Source: Piromyces finnis finn (Eukaryota > Fungi > Neocallimastigomycota). From it: 64,000 nt of DNA. The stretch covers positions 1 through 64,000 of the forward strand of contig MCFH01000100.1 in NCBI GenBank assembly GCA_002104945.1, given 5' to 3'. Shown one piece after another: positions 7,001 through 51,221 of the stretch. Made by a program: the position numbers and the translations under genes. The number at the start of each line of letters is the position of its first letter. The first letter of the stretch is position 1. The notes under the pieces were generated by a model that saw nothing but the letters and a program-made list of their open reading frames with translations, was not told where the DNA came from and made no database searches.

Positions 7001-7150
7001 TCATTGAACGACACAGCTACAAGTAACATATGGATTAATGTTACTTTTAATTTTATTTTTAGTTATACCATTTTTTGATTTTATAGAATTTGCAACAACT
7101 CTAGCACCAGTAGCTTTTAATAAAACGGAATTTGAATTTGAACTTGGCAT
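7001..7150 (-). CDS. 49-aa CaaX peptide P1, putative lipopeptide pheromone precursor: MPSSNSNSVLLKATGARVVANSIKSKNGITKNKIKSNINPYVTCSCVVQ
   Basis: Hand translation: ATG in AAA-ATG context, 150 nt, ends CVVQ-TGA. Three more intact copies exist. The pheromone function is inferred. Confidence 0.75.
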   Translation of the reverse strand: MPSSNSNSVLLKATGARVVANSIKSKNGITKNKIKSNINPYVTCSCVVQ

Positions 7151-10008
7151 TTTATTTTTTATTTGATTAATATTCGTGGAATATAGATGAAATTTATTAC
7201 TTTTTTAAATACTTTAAATTTAAATAATAGCAATATCTTTTTAAAATATTATTAAATTTTGATTTTTGAATTTCGATTATTATATTGAGAGAAGATTTAA
7301 ATAATAAAATTCAATTTTAAAATAATAAATAATCAAGAAAACAAATGCTTCTTATATATACTTTTATAAACCATTATTACAATTGCTATCCTATATAAAA
7401 TTACATTTTATTAAAGTTATTATTCTTTATAATTAACAACATTATTGTTATTAAATTTTAAAAGATAGGAGTTAAAACATATTATTAAAAGTTCCTATTT
7501 AATCTAAAAAGAATATACATATAATAGAACTAATAATATAACTTTAATTTACTTTTATTAATATTTTATAATTATTAAAAAATATTAATACTTAATTTTT
7601 ATTTTCCTTTTTTTAAAATTTAATAATTAATTAGATTAAACGAATATTCAAAAAGTTTGTATTAAAAATGAATTAAAACAGGAGAAGATAAATTTTATAT
7701 GGGCATAAAACTATAATGTATTAGAATTAAAAAACGGAATAATTTTGTAATTCTTATAAAATATTTGATAGTATTTAAACTTTACAACAATTTTAAAAAT
7801 ATAAATGTGACTATTTTACATTCCTATTACAAAAATAATAATTATTATAAAGATATTTTATTATTATTGTAATGATGAATAAACATTGTTTATGTTTTAA
7901 TTAATAAAAACCATATGATAATGTATCTTTTCTTAAAATTTAATTATTTAATAAGATTACTAATTATTATAATTAAATAAAAGAAAAAGATGTATTTTAA
8001 ATCATTAGTTATTTTATTACTCTTCTTCCAATTATGAATAACATAATTTATTAATTGAAACAATATATTATTACAGTTAAACCAGATTTCATATACAATA
8101 TATTAATAGTATTGTTTAGTTTAGTAATTATTTGTCTTTTTAATTAATAAATTATATCAATATAATTAGGTATTTATATTCTCATAGGATTTAAATATTT
8201 ATTGATAAAATTATTAAAATGAAAAATTATTATTATTTAAAAATATTATAGCGTTAAATGAAAATTATAAAAATAAGAAGTTTATGTATTTTATATAATA
8301 TTTAAATATTTATTTTCATTTTCATTATCAACATAGTTCATAAAGTACATTTAAAATAAATAAATAGGTTTCTATTTTCTCGAAATACAAAATATAAATA
8401 TATTTTTTTATCTTTTCTTCTTTTCCTTTCCCACTAATTAATTTTAAATTTTAATATAAAATGTGGATTATTTTTATTTTTTTTTTTATATTTATTAAAC
8501 TTTTTAAAAAATAACAAAGAAAACTTTTTAATTAAAAAATTGACCAATAAACATTCAAAATCAATAATTAAAAGATCTTTAAAAAAAGTTTACCTTTTAC
8601 TAAAACACTACTAAATGAATTGATGAATTGTTATCTTTTAATTATATAATGTTATTATTAATAAATCTTTATAATATTTTAATATTGGTAAATTGTATTT
8701 TAATAAGAATATTTAATATATTTTATAAACTAATTAATTATATTAACTAATACTAATACTTTAAATATTACTATTAATATATTAATATATTATATTGCTA
8801 TTAAAAGTTTACCTTAAACTTAAAAGAAATGTTGAGTATTTTTAATATGCCATTTAAATAAAAATAAGATAGGATTATTAAATATTTTATAGAAAATACC
8901 ACCAATACCATTTAAATTATAATATCTTAACTATATTAAATATTAATATCAAAACATATTAAAATAATATATAAATACTAATAAGATTTTTTAAAATAAA
9001 AAATAATATATATGAAATCTGGTTTAACTGTAATAATATATTGTTTCAATTAATAAATTATGTTATTCATAATTGGAAGAAGAGTAATAAAATAACTAAT
9101 GATTTAAAATACATCTTTTTCTTTTATTTAATTATAATAATTAGTAATCTTATTAAATAATTAAATTTTAAGAAAAGATACATTATCATATGGTTTTTAT
9201 TAATTAAAACATAAACAATGTTTATTCATCATTACAATAATAATAAAATATCTTTATAATAATTATTATTTTTGTAATAGGAATGTAAAATAGTCACATT
9301 TATATTTTTAAAATTGTTGTAAAGTTTAAATACTATCAAATATTTTATAAGAATTACAAAATTATTCCGTTTTTTAATTCTAATACATTATAGTTTTATG
9401 CCCATATAAAATTTATCTTCTCCTGTTTTAATTCATTTTTAATACACACTTTTTGAATATTCGTTTAATCTAATTAATTATTAAATTTTAAAAAAAAGGA
9501 AAATAAGAATTAAATATTAATATTTTTTTTAATAATTATAAAATATTAATTAATAAATAAACAAATATTAAAGCAAATTAAAATTATATTATCAACTTCA
9601 CTATATACGTTCTTTTCAGATTAAAAAAGTACTTTTAATAATACGTTTTAACTCCTATCTTTGAAATTTAATAGCATTTATTGTTGTTAATAATTAAGAA
9701 TAATAACTTTAATAAAATGTAATTTTATATAGGATAGCAATTGTAATAATGGTTTATAAAAGTATATATAAGAAGCATTTGTTTTCTTGATTCTTTTATT
9801 ATTTTAAAATTGAATTTTATTATTTAAATCTTTTCTCAATTTAATAATCGAAAATCCAAAAATCAAAATTTAATAATACTTAAAAAAGATATTTCTATAA
9901 AATATTTAAATATAAATTATTTAAATATATATTGTTTAAATTTAAAGTATTTAAAAGAGTAATAAATTTCATCTATATTCCACGAATACTAATCAAATCA
10001 AAAATAAA

Positions 10009-10158
10009 ATGCCAAGTTCAAATTCAAATTCCGTTTTATTAAAAGCTACTGGTGCTAAAGTTGTTGCAAATTCTATAAAATCAAAAAATGGTATAACTAA
10101 AAATAAAATTAAAAGTAACATTAATCCATATGTTACTTGTAGCTGTGTCGTTCAATGA
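10009..10158 (+). CDS. 49-aa CaaX peptide P2 (as P1 but K17 instead of R17)
   Basis: atgccaagttca...tgtagctgtgtcgttcaatga, 150 nt, in the opposite arm of the inverted repeat. Confidence 0.75.
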   Translation: MPSSNSNSVLLKATGAKVVANSIKSKNGITKNKIKSNINPYVTCSCVVQ

Positions 10159-10726
10159 ACAACGAATCAAACTAATAAAAAAATAATATAAAGACTTATT
10201 TATAATTTTAATTTTACAAATGAATAAATAAATAAAACATTTTTTTTTACTTTTTATCAATTACTATAATTTCATAATTTTAAATATATTTTAAAATACT
10301 CTCACATGTATATATAAATCCTTTTATATAATAAATTTAAATAGTAATAAAAATTATATTTTAATAATAAAATAAAATTAAAAAGTTTTATTCAATAATT
10401 AAAATGGATTTTTTGTTTTTCTTATTATTAATGTATAAATATTTCATTTTACTTATTTATAAAATTATTTATTAGATAAAATATTTAAAAAACATTTTTT
10501 TTTTACAGTATAAATTTAATTAAGTATAATCAATGAAATGTTAAATTAGGATTATAAAATTACCAGTAACAATAATTGTAATTATTTTTTAAATTTTATT
10601 TATATTATATAAATGTATACATTAATTATATCAAAACAAACTTAAACTTTATTACAATAAATGTTTTTTTTTATAATAAAAAGTTAAAAATAATAATTAT
10701 TAAAAATAATTAATTTAACTAATAAA

Positions 10727-11600
10727 GAACATTTAAAAATAAATAAAATAAGTTTTTATTTTCTCAAAATATAAAATATAAATATATTATTTTATCTTTT
10801 CTTCTCTTTAGCAACTTTTTTCTTTTTCGTATCTTCTACTTTTCCCACTAATTAATTTTAAATTTTAATATAAAATGTGGATTATTTTTATTTTATTTTT
10901 TTTTATATTTATTAAACTTTTTAAAAAATAACAAAGAAAACTTTTTAATTAAAAAATTGACCAATAAACATTCAAAATCAATAATTAAAAGATCTTTAAA
11001 AAAAGTTTTAACTTTTACTAAAGCACTTCTAAATGAATTGATGAATTGTTATCTTTTAATTATATAATGTTATTATTATTAATTCTTTATAATATTTTAA
11101 TATTGATAAATTGTATTTTTATAAGAATATTTAATATATTTTATTAACTAATTAATTATATTAATTAATACTTAAAGTATTAGTATTACCTAAAGTTTTC
11201 TTATTTTAATTAAGCTTTGAGTGTTTTTAATATACCATATATATAAAAATAATATATAATTATTATATATTATTATCAATATTTTAATATCTTATTATTT
11301 ATTATATATTGAATATCAATATTAAGGCATATTAAAACATTTTATAAATAGTATTAAGATTAAAAAAATAAAACATTATTTATGAAAATTGGTTTAATCA
11401 TAATAATGCATTGTCACAACTATTTAATCATATTATTCATTATTTTAAGAAGAATAACTTATAATTTGAAAATGCACCCTTTTATTTAATTATAATATAA
11501 CTTGTAACCTTATTTAATAATTTAATTTTTATAAAGATACATTATTACATGTATTTTATTAACTAAAAATTAAAATATGAACATATCATCTTATTATGAA
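10727..11600 (+). repeat. Partial, diverged tandem copy of the peptide-gene upstream cassette, no peptide ORF
   Basis: Repeats 8345 onward (aaaatgtggattatt...taacaaagaaaactttttaattaaaaaattgaccaataaacattc) and loses similarity before the ORF position. Confidence 0.75.
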
Positions 11601-14599
11601 AAAATATAAATACATTTAGTTTTCGTTTGTTAAATCAATGTAATTGTTTTTTAATATTTTTAATTTTATTTTTTTAACTATTAATTAATATATAGTTAAT
11701 AATACTTTTAAGAGTTAATTAATAAAATGTTTTAAAAATAAAAATTTTAATGTTTATTTTTTATTTTTGTGTTAATAAAATAGTTTTAATTATAATATCT
11801 GTTTTAACTTTATACTTTTACATTTTTAGTATAATTTTTATTATTTAATTATTTATTTAAATTAGTATTAAATTAGTTTTGTTTGTTTCATATTAAATAT
11901 ATGTATAATTAAATAGAATAATATATTAAAAATGAAAGTTAAAATACTTTTAATATTATATAGTTATCAATGATTTAAAAGGTGTTATATACTTTTTTTA
12001 TTTTATAGAGAATCCTAAACCATTGTAATTCAAAACCTTTATAATTTATTTATTATAAAGAAATAAACAATAAATCAGTAAAAATACATTATAATAATTA
12101 GGTTCAAGGATAATAATTTTTATATTGAATAATTTATTGTCCTTTTTTTTTTTTTTTTGTAAAAAGTATTTATTTCGAGTTTTTAATATATATATTTTAA
12201 ATATATAATTAATAATCTTTTATAAAAAATTTAAAATAAGTAATGAAATATTTTATTTTTGTTTTTTTTAATAAATAAAGGTAAATAGAGCATTTAATTA
12301 TGAATTTATTATATATATAATGATTTATATATAAAGTTTTTTATTAATCATTAGCTATTAATTTAAAAATTTATTAAAAATAATATATATTTCATTTTTT
12401 AAAAATATTATTAATATAAAAAAAATAAAACATAATGTATGGTGTCAAATAAACTTTCATGATTGTTTAATAACTATATTCATTGAATTACTAACATTTA
12501 ACCCTTTGAACCAATATTTAAATCGATCCTTTGTTACAACGGTATAATGCTAGCACTCTTGCCTATAGATTTATTACTAAACTAATCAAAAAGTAACTTT
12601 ATAGAGCTACTAATGGTAAAGAATGTTTTAGTATGACAAGTCACAAAACACTTTATATATATAAAGCATAAGAACGTGATGATCTATAAAGCTATTACAA
12701 ATATTCTAAAATTAATGATAAAAAGAATGTTTATTATGATCACAGCATATTCACAAGGCTTGGAATAACTCTATTAATTATCAATTATAATGCTGAAGGT
12801 ATTCTCAAAATTCGAATAGTTCATATAATTCCTAAGTTTAAATGAAGCTTATTATAGCCAATAAGTATTAACAAAATAATAAGTTTTGTTCGTATAATAA
12901 AGGTATTATTATTTAACATATTATAACAAAAATTATTAGTATTTCATAAAATATCAGTGTTGATGAGTTAAAGTACTGTATTATTTTTTTATAATCGATT
13001 AAAAAGGCAAAAAAAAATAAATAAAAACAATTTTAATGATTTTAAAAAATGTATTGTTTATTTACAGTAGAATATAATGTGGTTCTAATAATTAAAGTAA
13101 TAATCATTAGATGATACTGAAACCTTGTATTATGAAATTATATTTTAATAAAGTAATTATTAAAATAATAACAATTAGTTTGTGTATTAAAACTTCAGGT
13201 ATTTTATTTGTAAATATAAAAAGTATTTTATGTAAAAATTTTTAATTTTTTTAAAAATATTAAAGGGTTAGTATGAATGAGAACAATAAAAAGAAAAAGA
13301 AAAAAAAAACTTTCTATTAATGTTATTAATTATAAATAATTTACATAGTAGCAATGTTTACAGTGAAAACTTTCTACGAAAGAAACAAAATTTTCAGTAT
13401 TACTTTTTTACGACTTTTTAGACTATATTGTTAATACTGTAGATAAAATATTATACACTTGATCAAGTGGTATCTTGTGGGAAACTAATACTAATGCAAT
13501 AAATTATAAATACTAAAGATAACAAATTATTCAACTATGAACGTAGAATTAAATATGAAACTGATATAAATATTAAAGTTTTTTTTGTTTAACTGTGAAA
13601 ATAGTATTGAATTAGAAATCGATAAAAGTGTTAATGTTTTTTTTATTGTTATTTATGATAATAAACTATACTATTTTACTATTGGTAAAAGTTATTTATA
13701 AAACTAAATTATTAATTATCTGGTCCAGTTAATGGTGGGAATGAGAAATTATTTATTGAATTTGAAGATACAGTAACAAAAATGAAACCTGATATGAATT
13801 TATTAGTTAATTTCTTTAATATTTCATTATTTCTTAATTGATATTATTAGTTTATAGCTTTAATTATTAATTATAAAATAATATTATTTATATTAAACAT
13901 CATTTATCAATTTTTATAATTAAATTATAAAATAAAAACAACAACAATAATAGTAATAATAAAATAATGATGTTGCTATCATTATAAAAGATTTTGATTT
14001 CAAATAAATCTTCATTTTTTTAAATAATGAGATAAACCTTTCTCCATAGGTTTTTATAATCCAGATAGGTAATTTCTTTGAGAAATATTAATACATTTAT
14101 TTCTCAAAGAAATTAATTTATAATTTTCAAAGTTTTTTTATTATGACTTTTCTTTTCAAAATTTCAAAAAATAATATTAATTTCAAATGAGCTTTCAGAA
14201 AAGTAGACAATAAACATTAAAATAATTATTTCATATAATATAACTATTTTGTTTAAACACAAATTGGTATATTAGTGTATATATATAAGAAAACTAAATA
14301 TTTAAGCTTTTTATATTATAAATCTGTATTGCTCTTAGAAAATTTTTTTTAGCTAAAATGTTTGTCAAAAATTAGTGTAGTAATTAATAAATATCTTATT
14401 ATAAAAATAATAAAAAAAAATATTAAAAACCAATAGTACTAAACTAAATTATAAATAATTCTATTTAGTATCATTGGTTCTTTATTTGTTGGTATTCAAT
14501 ACCGAAAGTAAAAGTAATGTCTAATAATATTTAAAAACGGTTTTAAATAGTTCAAAGTGAATTAATAGCTATTTTTGATCGTAAGTAGTTAAGAAAGTG

Positions 14600-15750
14600 A
14601 TTGTAATTTCAGAAGAATTATTGATTATTACTGTGCAGGCGGTGATACATGCACTCAAACATATGAATATGTTAAAGATGAAACCTTAGATTCAACCGCC
14701 GGTACATTTTATTCAGAAAGTTCAATTATCAGTACTCAAGTTTCAGCTTTCGATATCTGTACAACTGGTAAAATAACTTGAACTAATACTAATGATGCAA
14801 GATTCTGTTTTGGTATTAAGGGTAGGGACAATACTCCTTTAGATATTAATATAACTACTGTTAAAAAGAAGAATATTTTTGGAATTGTAGATAAATATTT
14901 TTGATATTACCACTGAATATGTTACTGTAAAAGTCACTGATAACACAATTGCTTTAGATAAATCTGTTCCAGATAAATTAACTGTATAGAATTTAGTTTT
15001 TATTTGTTCCAAGTACTCATTATTAATTTTTTTTTATCTTTTTTTATTAAATAAGATTAAATAAATATTAAATTACATTTAACAAATGATATTTATAAAA
15101 ATAGCGATAGGAGCAGAGCACAAGCAAAAAAAAATTGCAAACCAATTACTATAGGCTCAACTGATCCAACGAAATGTAATATACTATTAATCTATTATTA
15201 ATCTATTGTTAATATTAATTTTAATGATTAAAATTTGGATTCATAATAACTTTATAAAATAAATTTTTTAAAATATAAAATCATAATAGGTACTAATGGT
15301 GTTAAATATTTCCTTGCTAAGAAAAATAATAATGGATTAACTAATGATATTTCAGTCAATGATTTATATATATGTAGAACTAGAGTATGTAAATAAGCAA
15401 TCAACAGTTACTGGTTATCTTTTGTATGCTGAAATCTACTACAAACTTCAATAATATATATATTAAATGTACATCAGCCGTAGGAAGAATAAATTCTTGT
15501 ACTTTATTTCCTAATTCCACTACAGGCGATAGTTGTAGTTGTAACTCTGTTAAATTAATTCAATCAACTATTGATAATTACAGAATTATATTGAAGGTGC
15601 TGCTTTTAAAGTATTAGATACAAAAGATAAATTTATTATTAGTGCTGCTGATACTACAAATGAATTTGTTGGAGGAATAAATGGTCATTTCATTGTCATT
15701 ACAAATGAAAATAATAACATTCTCTATAGCATTGGTGATAATTTATTTAT
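14600..15750 (+). pseudogene. Degenerate Cys-rich, scaffoldin-like coding fragments
   Basis: DYYCAGGDTCTQTYEY...FCFGIKG...FGIVDKY and later Cys-rich pieces, broken by stops and frameshifts. The family call is from motif resemblance to Neocallimastigomycota scaffoldin-like repeats. Confidence 0.5.
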
Positions 15751-15790
15751 TTATATGTAAAAGACTTTTAAATTTAAAAATAGTTTAATA

Positions 15791-15975
15791 CCATCTTTTT
15801 TTCCATTTACAAAAAATGTTGTTTTAACATTTTCTTTTTTAAGAATATCTAATATACTTTCGGTATATAAAACATCTGGACCATCCTCAAATGTTAATGT
15901 AATTTCTCCTGGATTACTACAATGATTATATGTTTCAATGTTAACAGCGGTTTCTGCATTAACATTATAATAACT
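15791..15975 (-). pseudogene. N-terminal exon of a CE4 (NodB/chitin deacetylase) domain
   Basis: HCSNPGEITLTFEDGPDVLYTESILDILKKENVKTTFFVNG, matching CE4 motif 1 (TFDDGP-like) plus the xTFF strand. Confidence 0.8.
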
Positions 15976-16429
15976 TTATTACAATGTAATTTAAAAAAGA
16001 GTAAACTTTAATGTATATCAACTTTTTATCATAATTTTTACAATTTCTATAATAAATTTAAAATTAAAATAAAAAACCATATAATGAAAATTACAATTAT
16101 TATATTAATTATGTGGAATATAATATTTGATTATTATTGACATTATTTATTCTTAATTCATGTTTGAATGATATAAGCTAATATCAAATAATTTATCATG
16201 CTTTATTTTTGATGAAAATAAGTGTGTAAAAGTTTCTAAATTTTAATTAATATTTATTTCTTACCAATTCACCTATTAAATGATTTTTTGATCTTTATCG
16301 CAGTTAAATAAAATGATAATAGTAACTTTAAAAGTCTATAATTATCATTTAAGTTTTATTAATTAATATTTCAATAAATAAATTTTTACAAATTCTTAAT
16401 TATAAAAAAATTACATATATCGAAGTTTA

Positions 16430-17630
16430 CTTTATTTTACTCCAGTAATAGTGTTCTCTTTATTAGTTTCATACATTGTAGTATCAATGAGATTGTAAGT
16501 TGATTCCGATAATGGTATCCCTTCTTTTGAAATACAAAGTTTCATTCTACTTTCAGTTAAGTTAATATTACCTTCATCACTTTTACCATTACAAATTTTA
16601 GATTCATAATTTCCACATCCATTTTCATTACATGATGCTAAAGCTACTGTACTACCATATTTTATGAAACCAGAGGTAGGGGTACATTTTCCATTAACCC
16701 AATCATAAAGATAAACTGAACCAAGATCATCTGAAGTTAATGAATCAAATAAATTTAATAAATTCTTATAATATCTTCTTCATTTACTTTTTAAGGCAAA
16801 ATTCCTGATTCAGTTAGTTCTTCAAATTTTTTACTTTTACGTTTATAAATTTTATTTTTTACTAAATAAGTTCCATCGTCTAATTATCATTAATAATAAA
16901 ATATTTTTTTTTCAATTAATACTGTATTCTTTGAAAATTATTTTTATTATTATAATATTTAATTTAATATATTTAAATACTAACCAACATTTTCCTGTAC
17001 TTCAGATCTTTCACATACACAATCCTCACATTCATATAAAGTATTTAAAATTGTACCGCTAACATATTGTTCTTTTCTTGAAATTATTTTCTTTTCTTAA
17101 TATTGACAAAATTTTTCATCTATTTATTTTTATAATAAATATTGTTTTTTATGATGAATAATTATTTCGATTAAATAAAATTAAATACAATTTTATATAG
17201 TATTTTTATTTTTATATGAATAGTAAACACTAGAATAATTGTTATTGAAATAAATTTTGTTTACATCACGATTTAAAACAATAACATCTTTACAAGTGGC
17301 AACAGAAGAAAAGATTGAACCTGAATTTATATTTCCATCTAAGATATAATTTTGTTTTACACCAAATTCAACACTTTCACCTTCTACAGATAAACAAACA
17401 CCATGATCTTTGTATTGTAAACTAATGTTAGTATTTCCATCACATTCAACACCATTTCCTGCTTTACTACTGGAATATGATTTAATTTCGTAATAATCTT
17501 CTTTTTTCTTCTTCTTTAGTATAAGTTACTTTAATTTAACCTTCAGTTTATTTACAAATATTACCTTTCTTACAAAGATGCATAAATAAACTTCCTTTCC
17601 ATTTCTAATTGGATTTTCAGTTTCACCAGT
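16430..17630 (-). pseudogene. Scaffoldin-like repeat fragments
   Basis: VYLYDWVNGKCTPTSGFIKYG...KLCISK; LYECEDCVCE; GVCLSVEGESVEFGVKQNYILDG. Interrupted by stops, frameshifts and AT-rich gaps. Confidence 0.55.
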
Positions 17631-17633
17631 TAA

Positions 17634-18450: not shown

Positions 18451-18490
18451 AATATTTTTAAATGGATAAAATTAATATAAAAATTATATA

Positions 18491-19307: not shown

Positions 19308-19480
<173 letters not shown>

Positions 19481-20094
19481 TTATCTTTTCTTTGTTCAGT
19501 AAGTCAATATTAATTTCTTTTAACAAAATAAAAGTTAACAACAAGATAAATGAGATCTTCAACAGAAATAATTATTATTAAATAAAAACAAGAATAAATA
19601 TAATATTAAGAGCTTACTAACCTTACAATTAAGCCAACTCGCTAATTATTCTTAAGTTTTATTGAAAATAATAATAGTTCAGTAATTGTTAAAGCTTTAA
19701 TTTTCTACTTTCAAATAATATTCTTGTTTAATTTAATTTTTTATAACTATAATTGGTATTAGAAATAATTACCATTTTAATATTCAAAAAAAAAAAAAAA
19801 AAACTTTTTATTTAATTTGGAATACTAATAGTTACTAATAGATGGGATTACTAGAAAAGATTACTCTATTCGACATTTCTCTATTCGTTATTTTTCATAT
19901 TCAAAAAACTATAAATAGCTTACTATTAAAAATTATATATATTTTTTTCCAAAAGATGACAAATCTACTCCTAATATAAGAAATTTATATTTAAGTATTT
20001 ACAATATATCAAGCTTCATATGAAATACTATTCATGTAAGTATAGATATAATTTTTATCAACAAACATCACTTAAATTAAGGAATTACTTGGAT

Positions 20095-20420
20095 TATTCC
20101 TATTCGATTCGATTATGAAAACACTACCAGAGTTGTTATTACTAGTAATAGAGTTATTCCTGACTACCCTTGTGTCTGTCCATGTTGCCGGTAGGATGAA
20201 CAATCTTTTTATCATTGGATTTTAGAATGTTTTGCATTCTTTGAATATTGAACTTCTTCACTCAGCTTTCATTATGATATTTTTACCCTTTTTTATATTT
20301 ATATTTTTATTTATTATTATTATTATGTCAAATCCATTATCACTTAATACAATATAAAGTAATATCACAAATTAAATAAATAAATATAAGAAGTATGTTC
20401 TCTTCCTAGTCTAAAAAAAA
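20095..20420 (+). mobile_element. Degenerate 3' fragment of a non-LTR retrotransposon (LINE-like), internally deleted relative to the 41.2-41.9 kb copy
   Basis: CVCPCCR*DEQSFYHWILEC (zf-RVT-like zinc knuckle), same 3' end as the other copy (gtct + poly-A). Confidence 0.7.
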
Positions 20421-20953: not shown

Positions 20954-20984
<31 letters not shown>

Positions 20985-21577: not shown

Positions 21578-21690
<113 letters not shown>

Positions 21691-30093: not shown

Positions 30094-30138
<45 letters not shown>

Positions 30139-30472: not shown

Positions 30473-33400
30473 TTTTAATAATTTATAAAAAAAAAGTAAA
30501 AAAAAACTGTTATTTAATTGTTAATTTATTTTCTTTTTTTATTTTAAAAAAAAGTAAAGATAAAATAGAAAAACAAAAACAAAAAAAAAAAAAAAAAAAA
30601 AAACGAATTTTTATACTTTAATTTTTAACTTTTTTTGTGTCATCTATTTCTTTTAGAATAGTCCAATAATACAAAAATAAAGGTATACAAATTTCGAAAT
30701 AAATAAGATTTTAAACTATTTTTAACCTATTTAAACTTTTATTAATCAATTGTAGTTTATTTTGAAAATTAATTAATAGAAAATTTTTAAGCATTAAACT
30801 TTATTTCGGTTTAACTATATTACACAGTCGATTTTAACATTTTTAAAGCATTAGAGTTTAAATTTTAAAAACCTTTCTATTTTCAATTTTACAATATTTA
30901 ATTTTAGTTTTAAAGTAAAAAATCAATCAAATAATTAAAGTCCTTATTATGAGACATAGTATTTAAAATATAAAAAATAAAATTTAATAAGCTATTTTTA
31001 TTTTTTTTACTCATGGGATACCTAACTAATTCTTGCATCAAAATATTAAAACATCAATTTAAATATTGAATTGATAAAAAAAATATATAGATTTATAAAC
31101 ATTTTTTTATTTTGAATATATACTTTTAAATGGATGTTAATTTTATTCATTACCATTATTATTTTTTATGCATAATGCCTTTCTTATGATAAATTACATG
31201 CATTATCAATGCATTATTAATACATTATATTAAATACATTTTACCATATAACATTAATAGTCAAAAAATATTTTATAAATTTTTTAAAATAAGTTAAAAT
31301 GTATTATCCTTTAGAATTATGTAGAGTAATAATATAACATTAATAAAAATAAACTTTTAACTATATTTATTGTACAATATACAATACATTTATTGTATTT
31401 AATGTATATTATTAGAAGTTGTTAATTTAGGATTTATAATTATTTCAACCTTTATTAGAGTAATGTATGATAAATAAATACATTCTATTCTAATCAAACT
31501 ACATTCATTAATATATTTATATTGTGACTTAAATATATATTCCAATACAATAGGATTCAATACATTTTAATGCATTTTAATAAATATTATAATCAATAAG
31601 ACTATAATTAATATCAAATATTTATAATAATATTTTCATTATGGAAAATAATAGTACAAATTTCAAAATATTTTATATTTTTTGTTAACTATAAGAATAA
31701 ATAAATAAATAACTTCTATAATATAAAATTCCACAACACACTAACATAAGCATTCCTATAAAATATATAAGATATATAAAATTTTAATCCAATATTATTT
31801 TATTTAGTAAAGAGAAATAGTAGTTTTAAAAAAATAAAAGTTTCTATGTTTATTTTGTTTATTTAATAGATTATTAAAACATTTTTAAAATTACTTTCCT
31901 TTCATTTTTAAAATTAATTCAATTATATATAATGTAAAGTAATTATAGTTAAATGATTCATTTATTCATTTATACATACATTTCATAATATATTAAATTT
32001 TATATTAAATTTTTTGTTTAAAGGTTGAAAAGCCATTAATTTATTAATTATGAAAAACATCTATTATGAATTTTACTAGAATGTTTTTATACAGTTACCT
32101 TTACACCTTTACAATTTATTATGATTACTTTTCATAAATTAAAAGGTTCATTATAGTTATATAATTATTACTTTTATGGTATATTCATTTTAACCATAAA
32201 AATATACCACATTCAAAATAAAGAAATTATTATTATATAGTTATATTTCTTGTAATAACATAAAAATACAAAATAAAAAAAAAATTATTATATATAAAAA
32301 TATATTACTTCTATTAATGACTTAATAATATGAATATATATTTGAAATATTATTTTTTTTAAATTATATTTCAAATATTGTTTAAATAATATTATTTTTT
32401 TTAAATAAGAGTTCCTATTATTTATTAATATTTTTTTATTATATTTTTATATTATAGTAATGTTTCAAATTTTATTTTATATTTAAACGTATTATTGAAA
32501 TATTAAATAATAAAAAAATATTAATAAATAATTAATTTTTTTGACATTTTATTATATCACATTAATTAATTCGAGAACCAGACCGCCAGTATTAAAAGAT
32601 TAAATCTTAATTAATTATAAAAATAACATTATTATTATTACTTTAATTTTGACATGAAATTTGAATTTCTACATAATCTTAACTTTATTATAACCAATAC
32701 TTTTTTAAAAAACAAAATTTTTGGTAAAGAGTAAAACTATATTTTAATATATTAAAATATATATGTTATTTAATTTACTTTAAAAACTTTAATTTTATTT
32801 ATTTTTTATTATTTTTACAGTATATAGTGTATACTATACAGTGTATTAAAATAGGATGTATTATAATTAACCCTTTTAATATGATTTTTATATTTGATTT
32901 TTAATAAAGGTTATATAATAATATAATAATCTATTTAGTAATTTATTTACTATACTCGAGCTATTATATAATTATAAGAGAAATGTATTAAAATTCATTT
33001 ATATCATAACAGATAATTCTTTAGTTTATTAGAAGTTAAATGACCGTATTTTTTATGAAATTTATTAAAAAAATTTTATTATAATTTCTTTTCCCATTAT
33101 TAATACTTTTAAAAATAATAAAAAAACAATTAAATATTACAATTAAAAATATGTTATTTTTTTATTTCAAAATATATATTATATGGATTTAATTATATTT
33201 CTTTTTTCTTCGAAAAATGATATGATATTGTATGGAATGTTTCAGGTTCTTACTATTTTCCTATTATGAAATAAATACAAAAAAGGAAATTTCATCATAT
33301 TTTGGATATGATTTAAAAAAAAAATTTTGACGTTTTTTCTAACTGCATAATAATAATTAATAATATATATATAAACTATTAATATTTTATCTAATATAGT

Positions 33401-33717
33401 ATAATATTAATAAAAGACATAATATTACACTTTATGGCACTAAAACAATTAAAAATTATAATATAAAATAATAAAATATATATAACAGTATAATAAAATA
33501 ATTACAAATATAATAAAAAATAAGTAATAATTAAAAAAAGTCAGATTTGAAAAAAAAATATAAAAGGATTGAATTTTGATTTATTTTAAAACATTTATTC
33601 TTAATTTGTATTATTTATATAATTAAAAACATTCTTTATATTAAGATATATTAAATATATCAAAATACTTTAAAAAGAAACTCATTATACTTATATTCAA
33701 CATAAAAGAAAGTAACA

Positions 33718-34838
33718 ATGAATTCAAAAAAAAGTCTTTCGAATACCTCGAATAATTTTTTAGAATCACCTAATCCAATTTTTAAAAGAAATTCTACATT
33801 ATCAAATAAACTTCTTAGTGATATTATAACAAATGATAATACCGCTGTATCAAGTTTTCCTTTAAAGCTTCCGGAAATCAGTAAGAGAAAAAATGACTTA
33901 ATTCAAAATATAAGCCGAAATTCAAGGCAGAATAATAATTCAGTAAATATTATATTTTTATTTATTGTTTTATTTTTTATTTTATTTATTTATATAACAT
34001 ATTTTATATTATATTTAATTAAAAAAAGTATTAACATTTTTTAAATTTAATAATTATATATTTATATACTATTATAGTTATTTTCAAATTTATCTTCACA
34101 AGACTCTTTTTCAATTGAAAACACAAGTCCAATATTAAATAATGCATCTTCAATGCCAGTACCAATAATTGACCCCTCTTTTATTAGCTCATCATGTTTA
34201 TCATTTGAATTATTTTCATTTAATGATATTTTTACTTCTTTCTATTATTCCAACTCAATTATAGCCGAGTCTTGTTCTAATTTACCTACAAATCAAAATC
34301 AAAATATAAATCAAAATTTATGTAATTACAAAAGATCAGCTAAAAATACATATTCAAATACAATTTTAAAAGAAAAAAAACAAAAAAATAAATGTGGGAA
34401 CTCAAAGAATCGTAAGCGCACTAAGTTTTCCAATAGAGTGACCAATATATTAAAAGAATGGTTCTCAAACCATTCTTTCCCTTATCCCACTATTATTGAG
34501 AAGAAGCGTCTTTGTGAAGCTACAGGACTTACAATGGTAAGTTATTTATTATTATCAATATTATAATTATTTTATAAAATAAATATATATATTAACAATA
34601 TTTTCTTTTTATATTTTTTATTCATGCTACATAATACAACCTATAAATGAATTTATATATATATAATTAAATATTAAAAATCTGTTTTATCTTTAGGATC
34701 AGGTATAAATTTTAAATGATTTTAAATTACAAATTATAATAATGATATTTATTACAATTCTAATTTCTAATTATAAATTTTATTTTAATATTATAGCTTA
34801 ATATCTGGTTTATAAATGCTAGACACCGTTATACATAA
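33718..34838 (+). CDS. TALE-like homeodomain protein HD-B, join(33718..33942,34078..34536,34697..34702,34797..34838), 243 aa
   Basis: KEWFSNHSFPYPTIIEKKRLCEATGLTM|DQ|LNIWFINARHRYT*. Splice sites are homologous to HD-A. Confidence 0.88.
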
Positions 34839-35774
34839 TTCTATGTACTTTTATTTAAATATAGAAATAGAATATTAAAGATAATAGTTATTATTACTAT
34901 GCGTTATTATATTATTATTAAACTTTTCAATTACTTATTTATATATATTAGAATGGTAATATCATATACTTAAAAAATTAAATAATAAACAATATAATAG
35001 TAAAAATAATAAATATTTATATATATATATATTCTTTACAATGTAATTTTAATCAAAAATAAATATTATATAATAAAGTTATTATAGTTTACAAAATAAT
35101 TATAAATACTTTTGCTATTCATATTTGAGTGTCTTGTTTCTAAAATATATTTATTTAATAATTCATTCATCCATTTATTTATTTATTTATTCTTTTAATT
35201 TACAACGGCATTAAACTATTGCTTTTAAAATTATTTCTAATTGAAAAATAAAATTTTATAATTATATAATATGTGGTTTTTTAATATAGAAAAGAAATTA
35301 TTATATTTTTTTAGTGTATTAACTATTTTATACAACAGTGTGTATTATATATTACAATGATCCATTTAATGTTAAAGGAACATTATAGTGAAAACAAATA
35401 ATAATAATAATAATAAAAATAATAAATTACATTATTAATATATCAATAATACACATATACCTATATTAAGTGTACTTTGTTAAACATATTATTTTTGTAT
35501 TGAAAAGACTACTCTTTCAAAAATAATATTAATAAATGAATATTCCAGGAAAAGAAAAAGTTTTAATATTGGATTATAATCAATTATAATTCAATTTTAA
35601 CAACAATATAAGAATTTTATGATAGTAAAAGAAAAGAATTTATTTTCAAATAAATAAATAAAATTAAATATATATAAAAAATAACAATAAGTAGAAATAT
35701 ATTGTAAATATTATCGATTTTGTTTTATTAATATGAAAAATTATAAAAACTACTACTACTACTACTACTACTAC

Positions 35775-35908
<134 letters not shown>

Positions 35909-37567
35909 TTTGTCTTTTATATGATAAATTAATATTTATTTCTAATATTAAAATTATTATTTTTTATTGATAATATATAATGTAAGTAGATATTCCATTT
36001 TAGTTTTATACTGTATATTATTTGTATTACCCACCAATCCCTCTTGGGAAATAGGTAAATACTTTAAATATTGTCATTTTTATTTTGTTTTACATAATCA
36101 ATATATATCAAGCATTGTCTTTTTTATTTTGCTATAAAATAAATAGCTAAAAAGGAAATATTTATGTTTAATATAGAATATCACTTGATATAGTTTGATT
36201 TACTATAGAGTAATTATATAAAAAAAAAAAAGCAATATTATAGAAATACTTTAATATCTATCAATTTACGTATTTGTATTAATTTAATGTATTTGTATTA
36301 AATATTTATTAGTTTATAATCAAGCCACAAATTGTATATAAGGAAGAAAATTTTTCATGGCTATAATGTATCATATGAATTTAAATAATATTATTTGATT
36401 ATACTTCATTACTAGATGCTTAGATGTACCTTCCATTATTGATTTAAATTTATTTTACACCAAATATCAAAATTTTACTTGATAATTTGAAGATGTATAT
36501 AGAATAGAAAAAAGACATTTTATATTATTTTATATAGTGTATAATATAGAAATATCATAATGTAATTGTTTAATATATCATAATATAATATAATATAAAA
36601 TAATATTAAATAGAATAGAATAAAATACAAATGCTATTTTATATATATTCTATATAATTAATGAATTGCCATTATTTGATATAATATAATAATTAAAAAA
36701 ATATTATAATATATTATTTATTTTATTAAATAGATTTTTTTTTGTTTATTTACTTCATTAATAATTTTGATACATCAATTAAAAATTTGAAAAGCCATAT
36801 ATTTATAAACTCTGGAAAACAATTAAAATAATAAATTATACATAATTGTTTTTATACAGTCGCAATTTATAATGACCATAATTCATAAATAAAATATTAA
36901 AATTCCGTTGTAGTTATAATAAATAATTTTTATTCAATTTATTATAATCCTATTTATATTTTATTAAATTATAATAATATTTCAAAATTTTACTTTTATT
37001 TTAAAATATGTTATTGAAATAGTAATTAAATTGTTTAATAAAATAAAGATATTTATATATAATTAACCTTGTAATCTTGTATCCCATCACATTAATTAGG
37101 TCGAGAACCAGACTGCCGGTATTAAATAATTAAATTTTGATTATTTTGACATGAAATTTAAATTTTTATATAATATTAGTTAAATTAAAGCCAATATTTT
37201 TTAAAAAAACAAAAATCTTTGGTAAAACGTAAAACGATATATCAATATATCTTTTGAAGTTATTTAATTTAGTTTAAAACTTTAATTCTATTTGTTTTAT
37301 TTAATTTGTTTTTTTTACAGTATATAGTATATAAGAAATAGAACGTATTATTATTAAACTTTTTTATATATGATTTTTAATATTTTAATTTAATCAAGGT
37401 TATGTAATAATCTACTAAATGATTTATTTAATGTATTCGAATTATTAAAATTCATCCATTCGATTAATGTTGTTCAGTTAAATTTCTATATTATTTATTA
37501 TTTATTGTTAATGAAAAAATTTATAATAATTGCTATTTCGCAATTTCTATTACTACTACTACTACTA

Positions 37568-37666
<99 letters not shown>

Positions 37667-38153
37667 TGGATTGAAGCATATTTCATTTTTCTTTGAAATA
37701 TGTTATTATATAGAACGTTTTAAGTTCTTACCATTCTTCTCTTTAGCAATAAACACAAAAAAGGAAATTTCATTATTTGTACTTTTAATATAATTTAAAA
37801 AAAAATTTTTTTGACATTCTTTCTAATTACATATGATAATAATAATAAATAAAATACTATTATACCTTATATAGAGTATAATATTAATAAAAGACATGAC
37901 ATTATATTTTATAATTATATTTTATAATATTAAAATGATTAAAAATATAATAAATAAATATATATATTAATAAAAAAGAACGAAATTTAAAAAAAAAATA
38001 TAAAAGGAATGGATTTTGACTTTTTTAAAACATTTATTCTTAATTTGTATTATTTATATAATTAAAAACTTTCATTATAATAAAGTATATCAAATATCAA
38101 ACATATCAAAATACTTTAAACAATCTCAACAGAAAAAAAGGAAATAGTGAATA

Positions 38154-39656
38154 ATGTCTTCTGAAACTCCTAAATCATTTTGTGCTTCATCTCCTTTTCC
38201 ACTATCTTTTTCTGCTGTAAATAATAGAAAATATTTTATGGAAATTAGAAGTCCTCTTCCCTCCCAAAGTAATTCAATTAATCCATTTATTACAAAAGAA
38301 AGTTTTACCAATCCCTTTGATAATTTTTTAGATTCACCTACTTGTTCTCCAGTCTTTAAAAGAAACTCTATATTATTAAATGAACTTTTTAGTAATCCCG
38401 AAATAAATTATAATAATGAGATATCAAGTAGTCCTATAGTACTTCCCACAACTAGAATTAATGAAAATCTATTTAAGAAAAATGAAGAAAATCAGTTTAA
38501 ATATATATCCCCAAAAATGTTAGAAAATAATAAGAATTTAGAGAAGAAGAAAAATGGGAAATTCAAATCAATGACAGAATTTGATAAGCTATCAACTGAG
38601 AATAATAAAATAAGTAAACAATTTTTAAATAAAAAAGATAGCTTGGAAGGAAAAAAAAAGAGGAAGAAGAATGATTTAATTCATAATATAAACCAAAAAT
38701 CAAAGCAGTGCAATAACTCAGTTAATATTAATAAAATTAAAAAAAATGTAAAAATACATATTTTATTTATTAACATAATATATTTTACATTTTAGTTAAT
38801 TGGAAAAATACTAACATTCTTTAAATTTAATAATCATGCATGTATATACTGTTTTAGTCATTTTCTTTTATACCATCAAAAGACCCTTTTTTAATAAAAA
38901 ACTATAGTCCCATATTAAATAATGTACCTTCAACATCAGTACCATTAATTAACACGCCTTTACTTAGCTCACCATATTCATCATGTTCACCATTTTTGTT
39001 TGATAATGTTTCCTCAAGTTCCGATTCCATTGTCTCAGAGTTTTATTCTAATTTTCCTTTAAATCCAAATCCAAATCCAAATTCATATCCAAATCTAAAT
39101 TCAAATTCAAGTTCAAATTCAAATTCAAATTCAAATAGTTGTGAAAAATCAATCATTAGTGTAGATTCATTGTGTTCAAATTCTGTCTCAAACGTAGATA
39201 AACATAAAAGAAAATGTGGGAACTCAAAGGGTCGTAAGCGCCCAAATTATTCTCACAAAGTTACTAAAATATTGAAAGAATGGCTCTCAAATCATTCTTT
39301 CCCTTATCCTACCATTACTGAAAAGAATCGTCTTTGTGAAGCTACTGGTTTAACATTAGTAAGTTATTAATTAATATCAATATTAATTATTTTCATAAAA
39401 TATATTTATATTAACAATATTTCTTTTTATTATTTTTCACACTACACGTCTACACAATATAAATTATAAATGAATATATAAATATAATTAAATATTAAAA
39501 ATACTTTTTTTCAGATTCAGGTATATTTTAAATAATTTTAAATTATAAATTATAATAATAATACTTATTACACATTACTAATATTTTATTATAAATCCTA
39601 ATTTCATATTATAGCTCAATAACTGGTTCGTAAATGCCAGACGCCGTTATTCATAA
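38154..39656 (+). CDS. TALE-like homeodomain protein HD-C, join(38154..38720,38858..39358,39515..39520,39615..39656), 371 aa
   Basis: KEWLSNHSFPYPTITEKNRLCEATGLTL|IQ|LNNWFVNARRRYS*. Longer exon 1; the first donor is the weaker GTTAAT. Confidence 0.85.
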
Positions 39657-40549
39657 TTTAATGTACTCATATTTAAATATAGAAATAGAATATTAAAAAA
39701 TAATTACTATTATTACTAATATTATTATTATTATATACAACTAAATTTTTATAATTATTTCTAATTATAAATAATATAGATTTATAATTTATTATTTAGT
39801 TTATTAATTTATATTACAATATAACATTTTAATATTGATATTGATCCATTTAATATTTTATAAATAATATATTAAAATAAAAAAAAATTGTAAGAATCAT
39901 TCAAAGTTTTTATATTTTCTTTTTTTTAAAAGGAACATTATAGTGTAAAAAAAAATAAAAATAATAAATTGCAAATATTAATATTTACAATTCATTATAG
40001 AAATAGAAAAATATCGATTATACATATTTAATTATATTAAGTGTACTTGGTTAAATTTGGTATTTTTGTATTGAAAAGATTACTCTTCAAAAATAGTGAT
40101 AATATAATTTTATAAATTAAGAAATATAAATAAATATAATAGTAATAATATCAATAACAATAAAAACATTAATAATAATAATTAATCACCAATAACAAAA
40201 ATACAATATAAAATTTAAAATTTTTTTGTTAATATTTTACATAAACATTATTATTAATATATATATAATTTATTTAAATATTAAATAATAAAGCAAAGCT
40301 AATAATAAATATGAAGAAAATTCAAAAAAAAAAAAAAAAAATCACAAATATAACAGATAATGTAAAATATATTTAATAATTTAAAAATAAAGCTATATTA
40401 AATAGAAATAAAAAAATAGAAAGTTTTGTAAAGTTATTAAACTAAAGAAGTATAAATTGAAAAAGTAAGTTATTTTTAATAATTTCATTTTTTTGAGTAG
40501 AATAAGTAAACTAAATATAAAAAAAATATAAAGAGAGAAATATAACTTT

Positions 40550-42254
40550 TTTTAAAATGATTATTACTTGAATCTTAAATTCATTTGATGTATTTTCATT
40601 TTCAGCCATTATTATATTTTGGAAAAACTAATAATAATAAAAACTAAAGTATTCGAAAGAAAGAATGAACCTATAATTACTATTTTTGTTATTTTATTAA
40701 TAATAACAAAATAGATAGATTAATTAATATATAAGCAATTATTTTAATTATTATTATTTATTAAAAAACTATTTATAAATATTATCTAAATATTATAACT
40801 TAATTATAAGTTGTATTTACTGAAAACTATTAGTATAATAACATAACTTATTCCTTTTACTCTAACACAAGAAATTTCAGTATTAGCCCAACTATCTGAT
40901 GTAAATAATTGAACAATTAATAATATAGAATTAAATATATTGTCGAAATTTTCATCAGGAATTTTATTTTCAAAATTCATCTTACCAGAAAATAATTGAA
41001 ATCCAAATGTGGCAAATATTATAACAAAAATAATCCAAATAATAAATAAACATAATTGTTTCAGAAAAGAATCCTTAATAACAATAAATAAAAATTGAGA
41101 TTGTTTTGAGTATCTACTAATTCGTAAAACTCTCAAAGATCTTAAAATTCTAAAAACAAATAAACCATTATTAGATGTTATGATAAATTGAATAATTATT
41201 GATAGAATGGTATTCAATTCAGTGATGAAAACCCTACCAGAATTGCTATTGCTAGTAATAGAGTTACTCCTGATTGCCCTTGTGTCTGTCCATGTTGCCG
41301 ATAGGATGAACAATCTTTTTATCATTGGATTTTAGAATAACCTGCATTCTCTGAATACAGAACTTCTTCACTCAGCTTTCTTGACGATCTTTTTACCCTT
41401 TTTCACAATAAATACAATAATCAATTCATCACTTACTTACTCTCTGAAATGGAAGTAAGAAAAATAATTTATAATTCTATTTTTACGTTTCTTCTTGGTG
41501 GAACTTTAGCTTATGACTATAAATCGATAAGGCGGAACAAAGACATTTGAATGAACAGCTTTACAGTTCATTGGGGTCTCATATTCCATAGGTAGTGGGT
41601 CTCTCGGCTTTTCTTACTAAAAAAAAAACCCTATCATTAGTTCATTAGTAGCTCAATGAAACTACTTTTTGATAGGTTTAGTAAGACGTCTAACGTCATC
41701 AAGAGTGCCGACGTCGTGGAACCGAATTGCAGAGTTCATTGAACATTTATGCAATTTTAATAATTATTTTATTTTATTTTATATTTATATATATATATAT
41801 TATTATTTTTATTTATTATTTATTATATCAATATGTATTATCACCTAATATAATGTAATATCACAAATTAAATAAATACAAGAAGTGTATTTCTTTCCAA
41901 GTCTAAAAAAAAAAAACCTGATAGAATGGTAAATATACAATCAACAATGTTGTATCCATATTGCTTTACATTACCAATGGGATTTAACATGTTTAATTTA
42001 CATATCATTTCCACTATAAATATTACAACAAATACTTTTGATAAATTGTCAATAATTTTTTTATCCTTTTCTGTACTATCTTTATTAATACAACTGACAC
42101 TAATAGTATCAACCATTATAACTATCATCATAAATGTAATTTGAATAGAATGTAACAATAGTAGTTCTTTATCATAAATTATATTAATAAAAGTTGACAT
42201 AATTATAAAATCTAAATTAACAACTCTTAAAAAGAATCTTAGAAGTGGAATCAA
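40550..42254 (-). pseudogene. Fragment of one repeat (S1-S6) of a four-domain voltage-gated cation channel, disrupted by a LINE insertion
   Basis: S2-S3 (IFIVEMICKL..YNIVDCIF), S4 (FRILRSLRVLRISR), S5, pore (ENFDNIFNSILLIVQLFTSDSW) and a frameshifted S6. No 5' end. Confidence 0.8.
41213..41917 (+). mobile_element. 5'-truncated LINE-like insertion with poly-A tail and 13-bp target-site duplication
   Basis: TGATAGAATGGTA at 41200-41212 and 41918-41930, poly-A at 41905-41915, degenerate CVCPCCR*DEQSFYHWILE zinc knuckle. Confidence 0.85.
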
Positions 42255-43856
42255 AATATAAAATATAAATATATATTTTTCTTCTTTTTAGCAACTTTTT
42301 TCTTTTTCGTATCTTTTTTCTTTTCCACTAATTAATTTTAAAATTTAATTTAAAATGTGGATTATTTATATTTTTTTTTTTTATATTTATTAAACTTTTT
42401 AAAAAATAACAAAGAAAACTTTTTAAATTAAAAAATTGACCAATTAATATTCAAAATCAATAATTAAAAGATCTTTAAAAAAAGTTTACTTTTTACTAAA
42501 GCACTACTAAATAAATTGATGAATTGTTATCTTTTAATTATATAATGTTATTATTATTAAATCTTTATAATATTTTAATATTGGTAAATTGTATTTTTAT
42601 AAGAATATTTAATATATTTTATTAACTAATTAATTAAATTAACTAATACTTTAAATATTACTATTAATATATTATATTGCTATTAAAAGTTTACTTTAAA
42701 CTTAAAAGAAATGTTGAGTATTTTTAATATGCCATTTAAATAAAAACAAGATAGGATTATTAAATATTTTATAGAAAATACCACCAATACCATTTAAATT
42801 ATAATATCTTAATTATATTAAATATTAATATTAAAGCATATTAAAATAATATATAAATACTAATAAGATTTTTTAAAATAAAAAATAATATATATGAAAT
42901 CTGGTTTAATTGTAATAATACATTGTTTCAATTATTAAGTCATGCTATTCATAATTTAAATATTAATATATGATTTGAAATACATCCTTTTCTTTTATTT
43001 AATTATAATAATAATTAGAAAACTTAATAAATAATTTAACTTTTAAAAGATAACACTATCGTATGGTTTTTAATAAATAAAAATTAAAATATTTACAATA
43101 TTAACATATCAATACAATAATAATAAAATATCTTTATAATAATTATTATTTTTGTAATAGGGATGTAAAATAGTCACATTTATATTTTTAAAATTGATAA
43201 AAAGTTAAATACTATTAAATATTTTATTAAAATTACAAAAATTATAATTATTCCGTTTTTAAATTCTAATACATTATAGTTTTATGCCCATATAAAATTT
43301 ATCTTCTCCTGTTTTAATTCATTTTTAATACACGCTTTTTGAATATTCGTTTAATCTAATTAATTATTAAATTTTAAAAAAAAGGAAAATAAGAATTAAA
43401 TATTAGTATTTTTTTAATAATTATAAAGTATTAATAAAAATAAATAAAAGTAAATTAAAGTTATATTATTAGTTCTATTATATGTATATTCTTTTTAGAT
43501 TAAATAGGAACTTTTAATAATATGTTTTAACTCCTTTCTTTTAAGATTTAATAACAATTATTGTTGTTAATAATTAATAATAATAACTTTAATAAAATGT
43601 AATTTTATGTAGGATAGCAATTGTAATAATGGTTTATAAAAGTATATATAAGAAGCATTTGTTTTCTTGATTATTTATTATTTTAAAATTGAATTTCATT
43701 ATTCAATTCCTATTTCAATATAGCAATCAAGGATTCAAAAAGTAGAGTTTAATAACATTTATTAAAATAGTAATAAAAATATTTCTGTAATATATTTAAA
43801 AATAAATTATTTAAAAAAAGAAATATAATTTTTCTGTCTACATTTTACGAATCAAA

Positions 43857-44009
43857 ATGCCAAGCTCAATGTTAAATTCAGCTTTATTAAAATCTACTGG
43901 TGCTGGTTCTAGAGCTATTACATATTCAAAACCAAGAAATAATATAACTAAAAATAAAGTTAAAAGTAACATTAATCCATATGTTACTTGTAGCTGTGTT
44001 GTTCAATAA
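43857..44009 (+). CDS. 50-aa CaaX peptide P4 (as P3 but R19 instead of G19)
   Basis: Hand translation, 153 nt, ends CVVQ-TAA, within a duplicate (about 42255-44600) of the P3 cassette (about 26640-28760). Confidence 0.75.
   Translation: MPSSMLNSALLKSTGAGSRAITYSKPRNNITKNKVKSNINPYVTCSCVVQ

Positions 44010-51181: not shown

Positions 51182-51221
<40 letters not shown>

Follow-up and report, generated by a model that had tools for sequence, protein, structure and literature searches.

A repeated family of CaaX mini-genes in the anaerobic gut fungus Piromyces finnis: candidate lipopeptide pheromone precursors near HMG-box and homeobox genes

To our knowledge, free-standing fungal CaaX peptides of about 50 residues are either pheromone precursors or G-gamma subunits. 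Here, a family of at least five open reading frames (ORFs) of this size, with members P1 to P5, is described from the anaerobic gut fungus Piromyces finnis (Neocallimastigomycota; assembly GCA_002104945.1) and compared with both classes. P1 to P4 lie in the first 64,000 nucleotides of scaffold MCFH01000100.1 (hereafter the window; GC content 17%), and P5 was located on scaffold MCFH01000056.1. Window coordinates equal record coordinates, since P4 occupies positions 43857-44009 of the record.

In Saccharomyces cerevisiae, MFA1 and MFA2 specify short cytosolic precursors that have no signal peptide, end in a CaaX motif and are encoded by more than one gene copy, and the P. finnis ORFs share all of these features. 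An earlier note on the window, made from its letters alone, had described a-factor precursors as short, with a dispensable N-terminal extension and a cut after Asn. This agrees with published work on Mfa1p, in which the extension comprises 21 residues, is dispensable for export and is finally cut off at N21|Y22, after Asn (PMC2148179). In P. finnis, an Asn-rich stretch precedes the invariant end. The yeast genes are unlinked to the mating-type (MAT) locus, and their Ste3 receptor is unreported in chytrid-like fungi (PMC3251606). There is no sequence similarity between the two families; the peptides measure 49-50 residues here and 36-38 in yeast, the terminal motif is CVVQ instead of CVIA, and an extra Cys is found in P. 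finnis two residues before the CaaX Cys.

Schizosaccharomyces pombe possesses three M-factor genes, mfm1-3, whose products differ at the N-terminus and yield the same farnesylated nonapeptide with Pro-Tyr close to the lipidated Cys. Transcription of these genes requires the HMG-box factors Ste11 and Mat1-Mc. The P. finnis family is comparable in its five genes with variable N-termini, one C-terminus and a position beside HMG-box genes, but homology is not demonstrable and the link to the HMG box is one of physical adjacency. In Cryptococcus, copies of the pheromone gene lie in inverted repeats. Basidiomycete MAT regions are repeat-rich and contain homeodomain genes along with multi-copy genes for CaaX precursors of 35-70 residues (for example PMC8305134). 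Multiple copies, repeats and homeodomain genes are thus common to the P. finnis locus and to the MAT-linked pheromones of Ustilago (mfa), Cryptococcus (MFalpha/MFa) and mushrooms (B/PR loci). There, however, a Ste3-type receptor gene adjoins and the mature peptides differ by allele, whereas here no receptor gene is seen in the window, a single C-terminus is found and the partners are HMG-box and TALE homeobox genes.

G-gamma subunits end in NP[FYW]...CaaX, often with an extra Cys. Resemblance of the P. finnis peptides to this class (e.g. Ste18) consists in small size, an NP-aromatic sequence before the CaaX motif and the additional Cys near it. They differ from G-gamma in length (about 60-110 residues in the latter), in a Ser/Asn/Gly/Pro-rich composition in place of a coiled-coil helix, in having no Pfam match and no coding exon within 700 bp upstream, and in their five copies.

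The CaaX open reading frames and their coding status

P1 (7001-7150, minus strand) and P2 (10009-10158, plus strand) encode 49 residues each and are referred to as subtype A. P3 (28060-28212) and P4 (43857-44009), both on the plus strand, encode 50 residues and are referred to as subtype B. All four were found at exactly the positions reported in the earlier note. Within a subtype the copies differ by 1 nt (R17K between P1 and P2, G19R between P3 and P4), and between subtypes protein identity is 71%. P1 and P2 form an inverted repeat, head to head, with their ATGs 2.9 kb apart. The intact CaaX ORF of P5 was identified on the minus strand at 287745-287897 of MCFH01000056.1 (12261-12413 of L012, the locus fetched from this scaffold). 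In L011, the locus fetched from MCFH01000100.1, P4 occupies 3001-3153. The GenBank annotation shown for L011 and L012 contains no gene model at P4 or P5, and for these two copies the earlier description of the family as unannotated is correct.

The start codon stands in the context AAAATG or CAAAATG, and both subtypes begin with the common pattern MPSS..NS.LLK.TGA. The N-terminus, MPSS(N/M)..., is hydrophilic and, as read from the sequence, has no hydrophobic run of at least 7 residues and no signal peptide. All copies end in ITKNK(I/V)KSNINPYVTCSCVVQ, with CVVQ followed by a stop in 5/5 copies; in P1, for example, NPYVTCSCVVQ is followed by TGA. The common C-terminus reported earlier was recovered in all four window copies, whose final 22 residues are identical except for one I/V exchange. 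Variation is concentrated at the other end of the ORF: the first 84 nt hold about 30 variable sites, the last 66 nt 2. The synonymous GTC/GTT change described previously is real. The supposed TGA/TAA stop swap is actually a 3-nt TAA insertion ahead of TGA (P3 reads TAA, then TGA), and besides the in-frame 3-nt indel already noticed a 6-nt in-frame indel separates the subtypes. CaaX motifs with X = Q are of the farnesyltransferase type. An a-factor variant ending in CAMQ has been used in yeast genetics (PMC2148179).

For evaluation of coding potential, codon frequencies from Pfam-supported window ORFs were set against intergenic trinucleotide frequencies. The sense frame scored a log-likelihood ratio (LLR) of +32 to +35 bits in all four window ORFs (+32.6 bits in P1). 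In the controls, true coding windows had a mean of +29 bits and intergenic windows a mean of -40 bits, and the 99th percentile of the intergenic best-of-six-frames score was 13 bits. The GC content of the ORFs was 27-28% compared to 10-15% in the flanks, a level reached by only 1.9% of intergenic 150-nt windows. Frame and ATG are both kept across about 24 substitutions and the two in-frame indels between subtypes; in a neutral simulation, in which indels were left uncounted, both were kept in 8-14% of trials. P5 and P3 are 97.4% identical and gapless over the ORF, with flanks that are 82-94% identical and gapped. Their four differences are all non-synonymous and all N-terminal, and the C-terminus is unchanged. 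P1 to P5 are considered to be probably real and translated CaaX mini-genes.

It is rather unlikely that the ORFs are instead non-functional, i.e. a chance ORF or decayed relic carried along in duplicated, gene-converted segments, with a coincidental CaaX end. Because all copies belong to one repeat family, they amount to about one independent event. Conservation of the non-coding flanks equals that of the ORF, and the ratio of non-synonymous to synonymous substitution rates (dN/dS) between subtypes is uninformative at about 0.76 (7 synonymous and 19 non-synonymous changes). Since all four P3-P5 changes are non-synonymous as well, classical purifying selection is not demonstrable. For the same reasons, dN/dS and conserved flanks, the earlier argument that a synonymous change and a stop swap reveal coding constraint is weak. 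A non-functional origin would also accord with thin RNA evidence, with an antisense ORF that is open too and with the lack of a homologue in any search of proteins, metagenomes and the ESM Atlas. By chance, 0.23 CaaX ORFs of at least 40 residues are expected per Markov-shuffled window of the same composition; P1 to P4 are the only Met-started ORFs of at least 25 residues in the window that end in CaaX. Such an origin is opposed by gene-like codon usage far outside the intergenic distribution, seen in the sense and not in the antisense frame, and by the GC island coinciding with the ORF. The preserved frame and ATG, and a conservation peak over the C-terminal 22 codons that breaks off at the stop, argue in the same direction, as does an intact ORF in 5/5 copies on two scaffolds, including copies that have no HMG-box neighbour.

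The antisense ORF just mentioned is hydrophobic, comprises 42-44 residues and is open opposite each peptide ORF, e.g. at 9993-10121 and 28041-28175 (both minus strand). It was rejected as the actual gene: with a codon usage (3-12 bits) that is not coding-like, it probably arises as a side effect of the sense frame.

Repeat context and transcript evidence

The CaaX ORFs are embedded in segmental repeats of 2-4 kb. As these also conserve non-coding flanks, conservation of the ORF alone is no evidence of coding. Identity between subtypes varies along the repeat unit, described here for P3 (plus strand). An upstream non-coding block (27483-27887) is 92-100% identical between subtypes, holds TATAAAAG/TATATATAAG and has no open frames. 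Equivalent blocks were located at 7317-7743 (minus strand) and at 9361-9807 and 43247-43686 (plus strand). This block lies about 210-660 bp upstream of the ORFs and is a candidate promoter. It is followed by a divergent patch of about 300 bp (27888-28144) with 67-85% identity and indels, which takes in the first 28 codons and the upstream sequence next to them. Directly after the patch come the near-invariant C-terminal 22 codons (28145-28212), which are 96-97% identical between subtypes, and identity falls right past the stop.

The last 66 nt of the ORF thus contain 2 differences, compared to 15-33% divergence in the adjoining DNA. At a local divergence of 15-25%, at most two differences have a probability of 2e-3 to 1e-6, a value that is weakened by mosaic gene conversion. 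Since non-coding flanks are highly conserved, the pattern could in part be due to homogenisation through gene conversion. Scanning the window for tRNAs and Rfam families gave no match, so that the conserved flanks cannot be attributed to a known RNA family or tRNA.

A distinct AT-rich repeat (about 0.85 kb) was found at 8340-9215, 10722-11574, 26633-27481, 42251-43092 and 60083-60966. It lies upstream of P2, P3 and P4, and two further occurrences have no peptide gene, which makes the peptide repeat units composite. Another non-coding repeat, of 1.8-2.4 kb, is present in opposite orientation at 1-2425 and 35838-37595 with 97% identity. The copy at 1-2425 contains internal inverted repeats (80-390 versus 893-1204), and the repeat looks like a foldback-type mobile element.

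For transcript evidence, three small RNA-labelled runs of P. finnis were mapped on positions 26700-29650. In run X3, one unspliced contig of 235 nt with a depth of 3.9 was colinear with 28020-28254, extending from 40 nt 5' of the P3 ATG to 42 nt 3' of its stop. It was the only substantial X3 contig on this 2.95-kb stretch. The contig is 97% identical to P3 and P4-like, with GTC at Val48. As it matches none of P3, P4 and P5 exactly, it may stem from a further copy or allele. It argues against DNA contamination, because contaminant DNA would cover the flanks too, and for a small unspliced transcript. Transcription is nevertheless weakly supported, since the contig has low depth and carries no strand information. 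In run X1, a 759-nt contig showed the neighbouring HMG-box gene spliced, with a 162-nt intron. Most matches of the runs on the mapped stretch were AT-rich chance alignments of 20-30 nt and were disregarded.

The same data bear on whether each ORF could be the terminal exon of a longer prenylated protein, such as a G-gamma subunit, as the earlier note had considered, or a small GTPase, with more distant upstream exons and an internal or intronic ATG. The G-gamma-like ending with its extra Cys would fit, and between subtypes the first half of the ORF has diverged in the manner of non-coding DNA. Stops, however, fill all three frames within 700 bp upstream in 4/4 copies, and the 2.9-kb gap between P1 and P2, which are head to head, contains no ORF above 40 residues and no conserved open frame. 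Pfam G-gamma and GTPase families were not matched at E values up to 10, the sole match of the peptides in the Pfam scan being a chance CUB hit (E 0.024). The X3 contig is colinear with the genome from position -40 across the whole ORF, codon usage is coding-like along its entire length, no JGI model ends at P4 or P5, and a G-gamma gene would be unusual in five copies. An upstream-exon origin was rejected on the basis of the upstream stops, the missing Pfam G-gamma match and the colinear contig, and is regarded as highly improbable. Stand-alone, intronless, protein-coding mini-genes with a farnesyl-type CaaX end are in turn supported by codon usage, GC island, frame, conservation peak and the colinear contig.

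A proposed lipopeptide signal and its gene neighbourhood

The favoured, though tentative, reading of the peptides is a secreted pheromone-like signal in the style of a-factor, M-factor or the MAT-linked precursors of basidiomycetes, which is held to be possible, at somewhat short of even chances. Traits in its favour that can be read from the sequence are small size, a CaaX motif with X = Q and the lack of any hydrophobic signal. The distribution of variable sites fits a variable, removable N-terminal extension joined to a constant C-terminal part (about 30 versus 2 sites). There are several gene copies, some of them in inverted repeats; 3/5 converge with an HMG-box gene, and both loci contain TALE genes.

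In the proposed sequence of events, drawn up by analogy with a-factor, a precursor of 49-50 residues would be synthesised in the cytosol without a signal peptide, and the CVVQ cysteine (Cys46/47) would be farnesylated. VVQ would then be cleaved off by proteases of the Rce1 or Ste24 type, the resulting C-terminal Cys methyl-esterified and the variable N-terminal 27-28 residues removed. A short lipopeptide from the invariant ...KSNINPYVTCSC end would be exported by a Ste6-like ABC pump and could act as a signal between cells. As five copies would give the same mature peptide, copy number would raise the dose and not the number of specificities. Translation, prenylation, processing, export and pheromone function are all inferred here; the mature product specified in the earlier note, and a palmitoylated or disulfide-linked role of the second Cys, are pure inference. 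Homologues of STE6, STE20 and GPA1 have been reported in anaerobic fungi (PMC6883316), and anaerobic chytrids have larger numbers of Rce1-type CAAX peptidases (PMC8778642).

Three copies of an HMG-box gene were identified in the window. Copy 1 (4571-6153, plus strand) has two exons with an exon-1 ORF of 421 residues and is placed tail-to-tail with P1. Copy 2 (28898-30472, minus strand) consists of exon 1 (30472-29262), the 162-nt intron and exon 2 (29099-28898). Its spliced model of 470 residues agrees with JGI models; two JGI models belonging to the family, P0001 and P0002, bear the UniRef name 'HMG box domain-containing'. Copy 3 (50857-52380, plus strand) has no adjoining CaaX ORF. P1, P3 and P5 each lie tail-to-tail with an HMG-box gene at a distance of 0.7-0.85 kb, the stops of P3 and copy 2 being 686 bp apart; at P2 and P4 the HMG neighbour is lost and the CaaX ORF still intact. 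The predicted proteins have an Asn-rich N-terminus, a conserved domain of about 80 residues (NYYYIPS...LLYFMEELN) and then the HMG box, which is interrupted by the intron. Pfam HMG_box was matched over the full profile with 19-25 bits, just under the cut-off of 25.4, and the best relatives in PDB were all SOX proteins (top SOX-18, E 0.004). By these matches, the copies appear to carry a divergent SOX/MATA-like HMG box. An HMG-domain profile run against 1.84 billion representatives gave only 16 matches, from Pecoramyces and metagenomes, and the family thus appears narrow and lineage-restricted.

TALE homeobox genes were likewise found in three copies on the plus strand. Copies 2 (about 34078-34563) and 3 (38151-39367) match Homeobox_KN at threshold with 24.2-24.6 bits. 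Copy 1 (24511-25536) was assigned by paralogy only, its scanned ORF having no Homeobox_KN match. The corresponding repeat blocks (23319-26495, 32500-35536 and 37034-39776) are interleaved with the HMG and CaaX blocks. On MCFH01000056.1, an HMG-box gene (L012:10001-11534) and two copies of the TALE block (L012:4389-7576 and 14228-17167) accompany P5; one of the two holds a called TALE model of 259 residues with PF05920. This locus repeats the blocks of the window with 80-88% identity across all 21.5 kb fetched and may be either a paralogue or a diverged haplotype.

Regulators of the MAT type, HMG-box and homeobox, are present at the locus. The tail-to-tail placement of CaaX and HMG-box genes, with TALE genes close by, suggests a mating-type-like regulatory neighbourhood. 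The more specific proposal, in which a true mating-type-like region of Neocallimastigomycota (HMG-box, TALE homeobox and lipopeptide) has the five CaaX mini-genes as its pheromone genes, is doubtful at present.

Several observations weigh against a pheromone, in addition to the dN/dS value, the lack of demonstrable purifying selection and the possible homogenisation by gene conversion described above. RNA support consists of the strand-less, depth-3.9 contig from 1/3 small runs, whose RNA status was itself guessed. Because all copies have one C-terminus, there is no sign of mating-type-specific pheromone alleles. No seven-transmembrane or receptor gene was seen among the window genes. Ste2 and Ste3 receptors were not found in Chytridiomycota by surveys (PMC3251606), and Ste3 is placed mainly in Dikarya (PMC12842992; PMC3251606). 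Searches for relatives were negative throughout. P1 gave no homologue candidate among 5.8 billion predicted proteins, and P2 and P3, looked up as exact sequences among 153 billion gene positions, were not on record. A degenerate DNA pattern for NPYVTCSCVVQ had 0 matches in JGI metagenomes, and a profile-driven metagenome scan produced 600 pattern matches, of which 0 were confirmed by tblastn. In the ESM Atlas nothing exceeded chance (top score 0.74). The contigs of the 16 HMG homologues measure 1.7-3.4 kb or end about 1 kb past the HMG-box gene; L018 (8.6 kb, with a distant HMG homologue), which has the only other usable flanks, contains no CaaX ORF alongside. The comparison across species covers one P. 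finnis genome and the HMG contigs of relatives, which are mostly short, with eukaryote assemblies outside the search.

All coding evidence applies equally to a prenylated micro-protein that is anchored on the cytosolic face of a membrane and never exported, for instance a small regulator or a decoy for the prenylation or membrane-targeting machinery. A lysine-rich stretch combined with an extra Cys and a CaaX motif resembles the membrane-targeting tail of Ras and Rho, and the C-terminus TKNK(I/V)KSN...CSCVVQ provides basic residues, a second Cys and CaaX. A missing Ste3-type receptor in reports on chytrids (PMC3251606) would also be in keeping with an intracellular role. This role is nonetheless judged improbable to a similar degree as a non-functional origin. 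Multiple copies, variable N-termini with an identical C-terminus and linkage to HMG-box and homeobox genes fit a processed signal better. We also know of no described fungal family of intracellular peptides of this kind.

Other genes of the window comprise an Agd3-type deacetylase, NodB deacetylases, cation-channel pieces, TFIIS and an ankyrin protein. The Agd3-type galactosaminogalactan deacetylase (45671-48226, minus strand) is intronless, encodes 851 residues and contains CBM87, CE and a C-terminal domain (E 1e-78). Its composition stands out, since its GC content of 33% is about twice that of the surroundings, and it was possibly acquired horizontally. The cation-channel pieces (Ion_trans/PKD-like, one with an EF-hand) lie at 20075-20221, 40807-41331 and 62285-63918 (minus strand). 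They are scattered among the repeats, and some resemble duplicated fragments.

Meaning for anaerobic gut fungi

P. finnis is regarded as asexual, and a sexual cycle is unconfirmed for anaerobic gut fungi in general. A genome survey found neither homologues of the S. cerevisiae peptide mating factors nor a complete mating pathway in this group (PMC6883316), and a literature search yielded no mention of a MAT locus in anaerobic gut fungi. Lipopeptide pheromones, together with their Ste3 receptors, are regarded as having arisen in the Dikarya (PMC3251606).

The finding is put forward as a well-founded, testable hypothesis resting on one genome. If the CaaX genes do belong as pheromone genes to a mating-type-like region, the P. 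finnis family would represent the first farnesylated peptide pheromone outside Dikarya, a-factor-type signalling would predate the split between chytrid-like fungi and Dikarya, and a cryptic sexual or parasexual cycle would be implied in anaerobic gut fungi. The receptor would then be a very divergent Ste3 or an unrelated G-protein-coupled receptor. Should the peptides stay inside the cell, they would form an undescribed class of prenylated micro-proteins; should they be unexpressed, they would be a warning on short ORFs inside segmental repeats. The CaaX family, with its ties to HMG-box and homeobox regulators, offers a concrete candidate signal that can be synthesised and would make the question of mating directly testable. 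If mating proved inducible, a breeding route would be opened for organisms that are hard to engineer.

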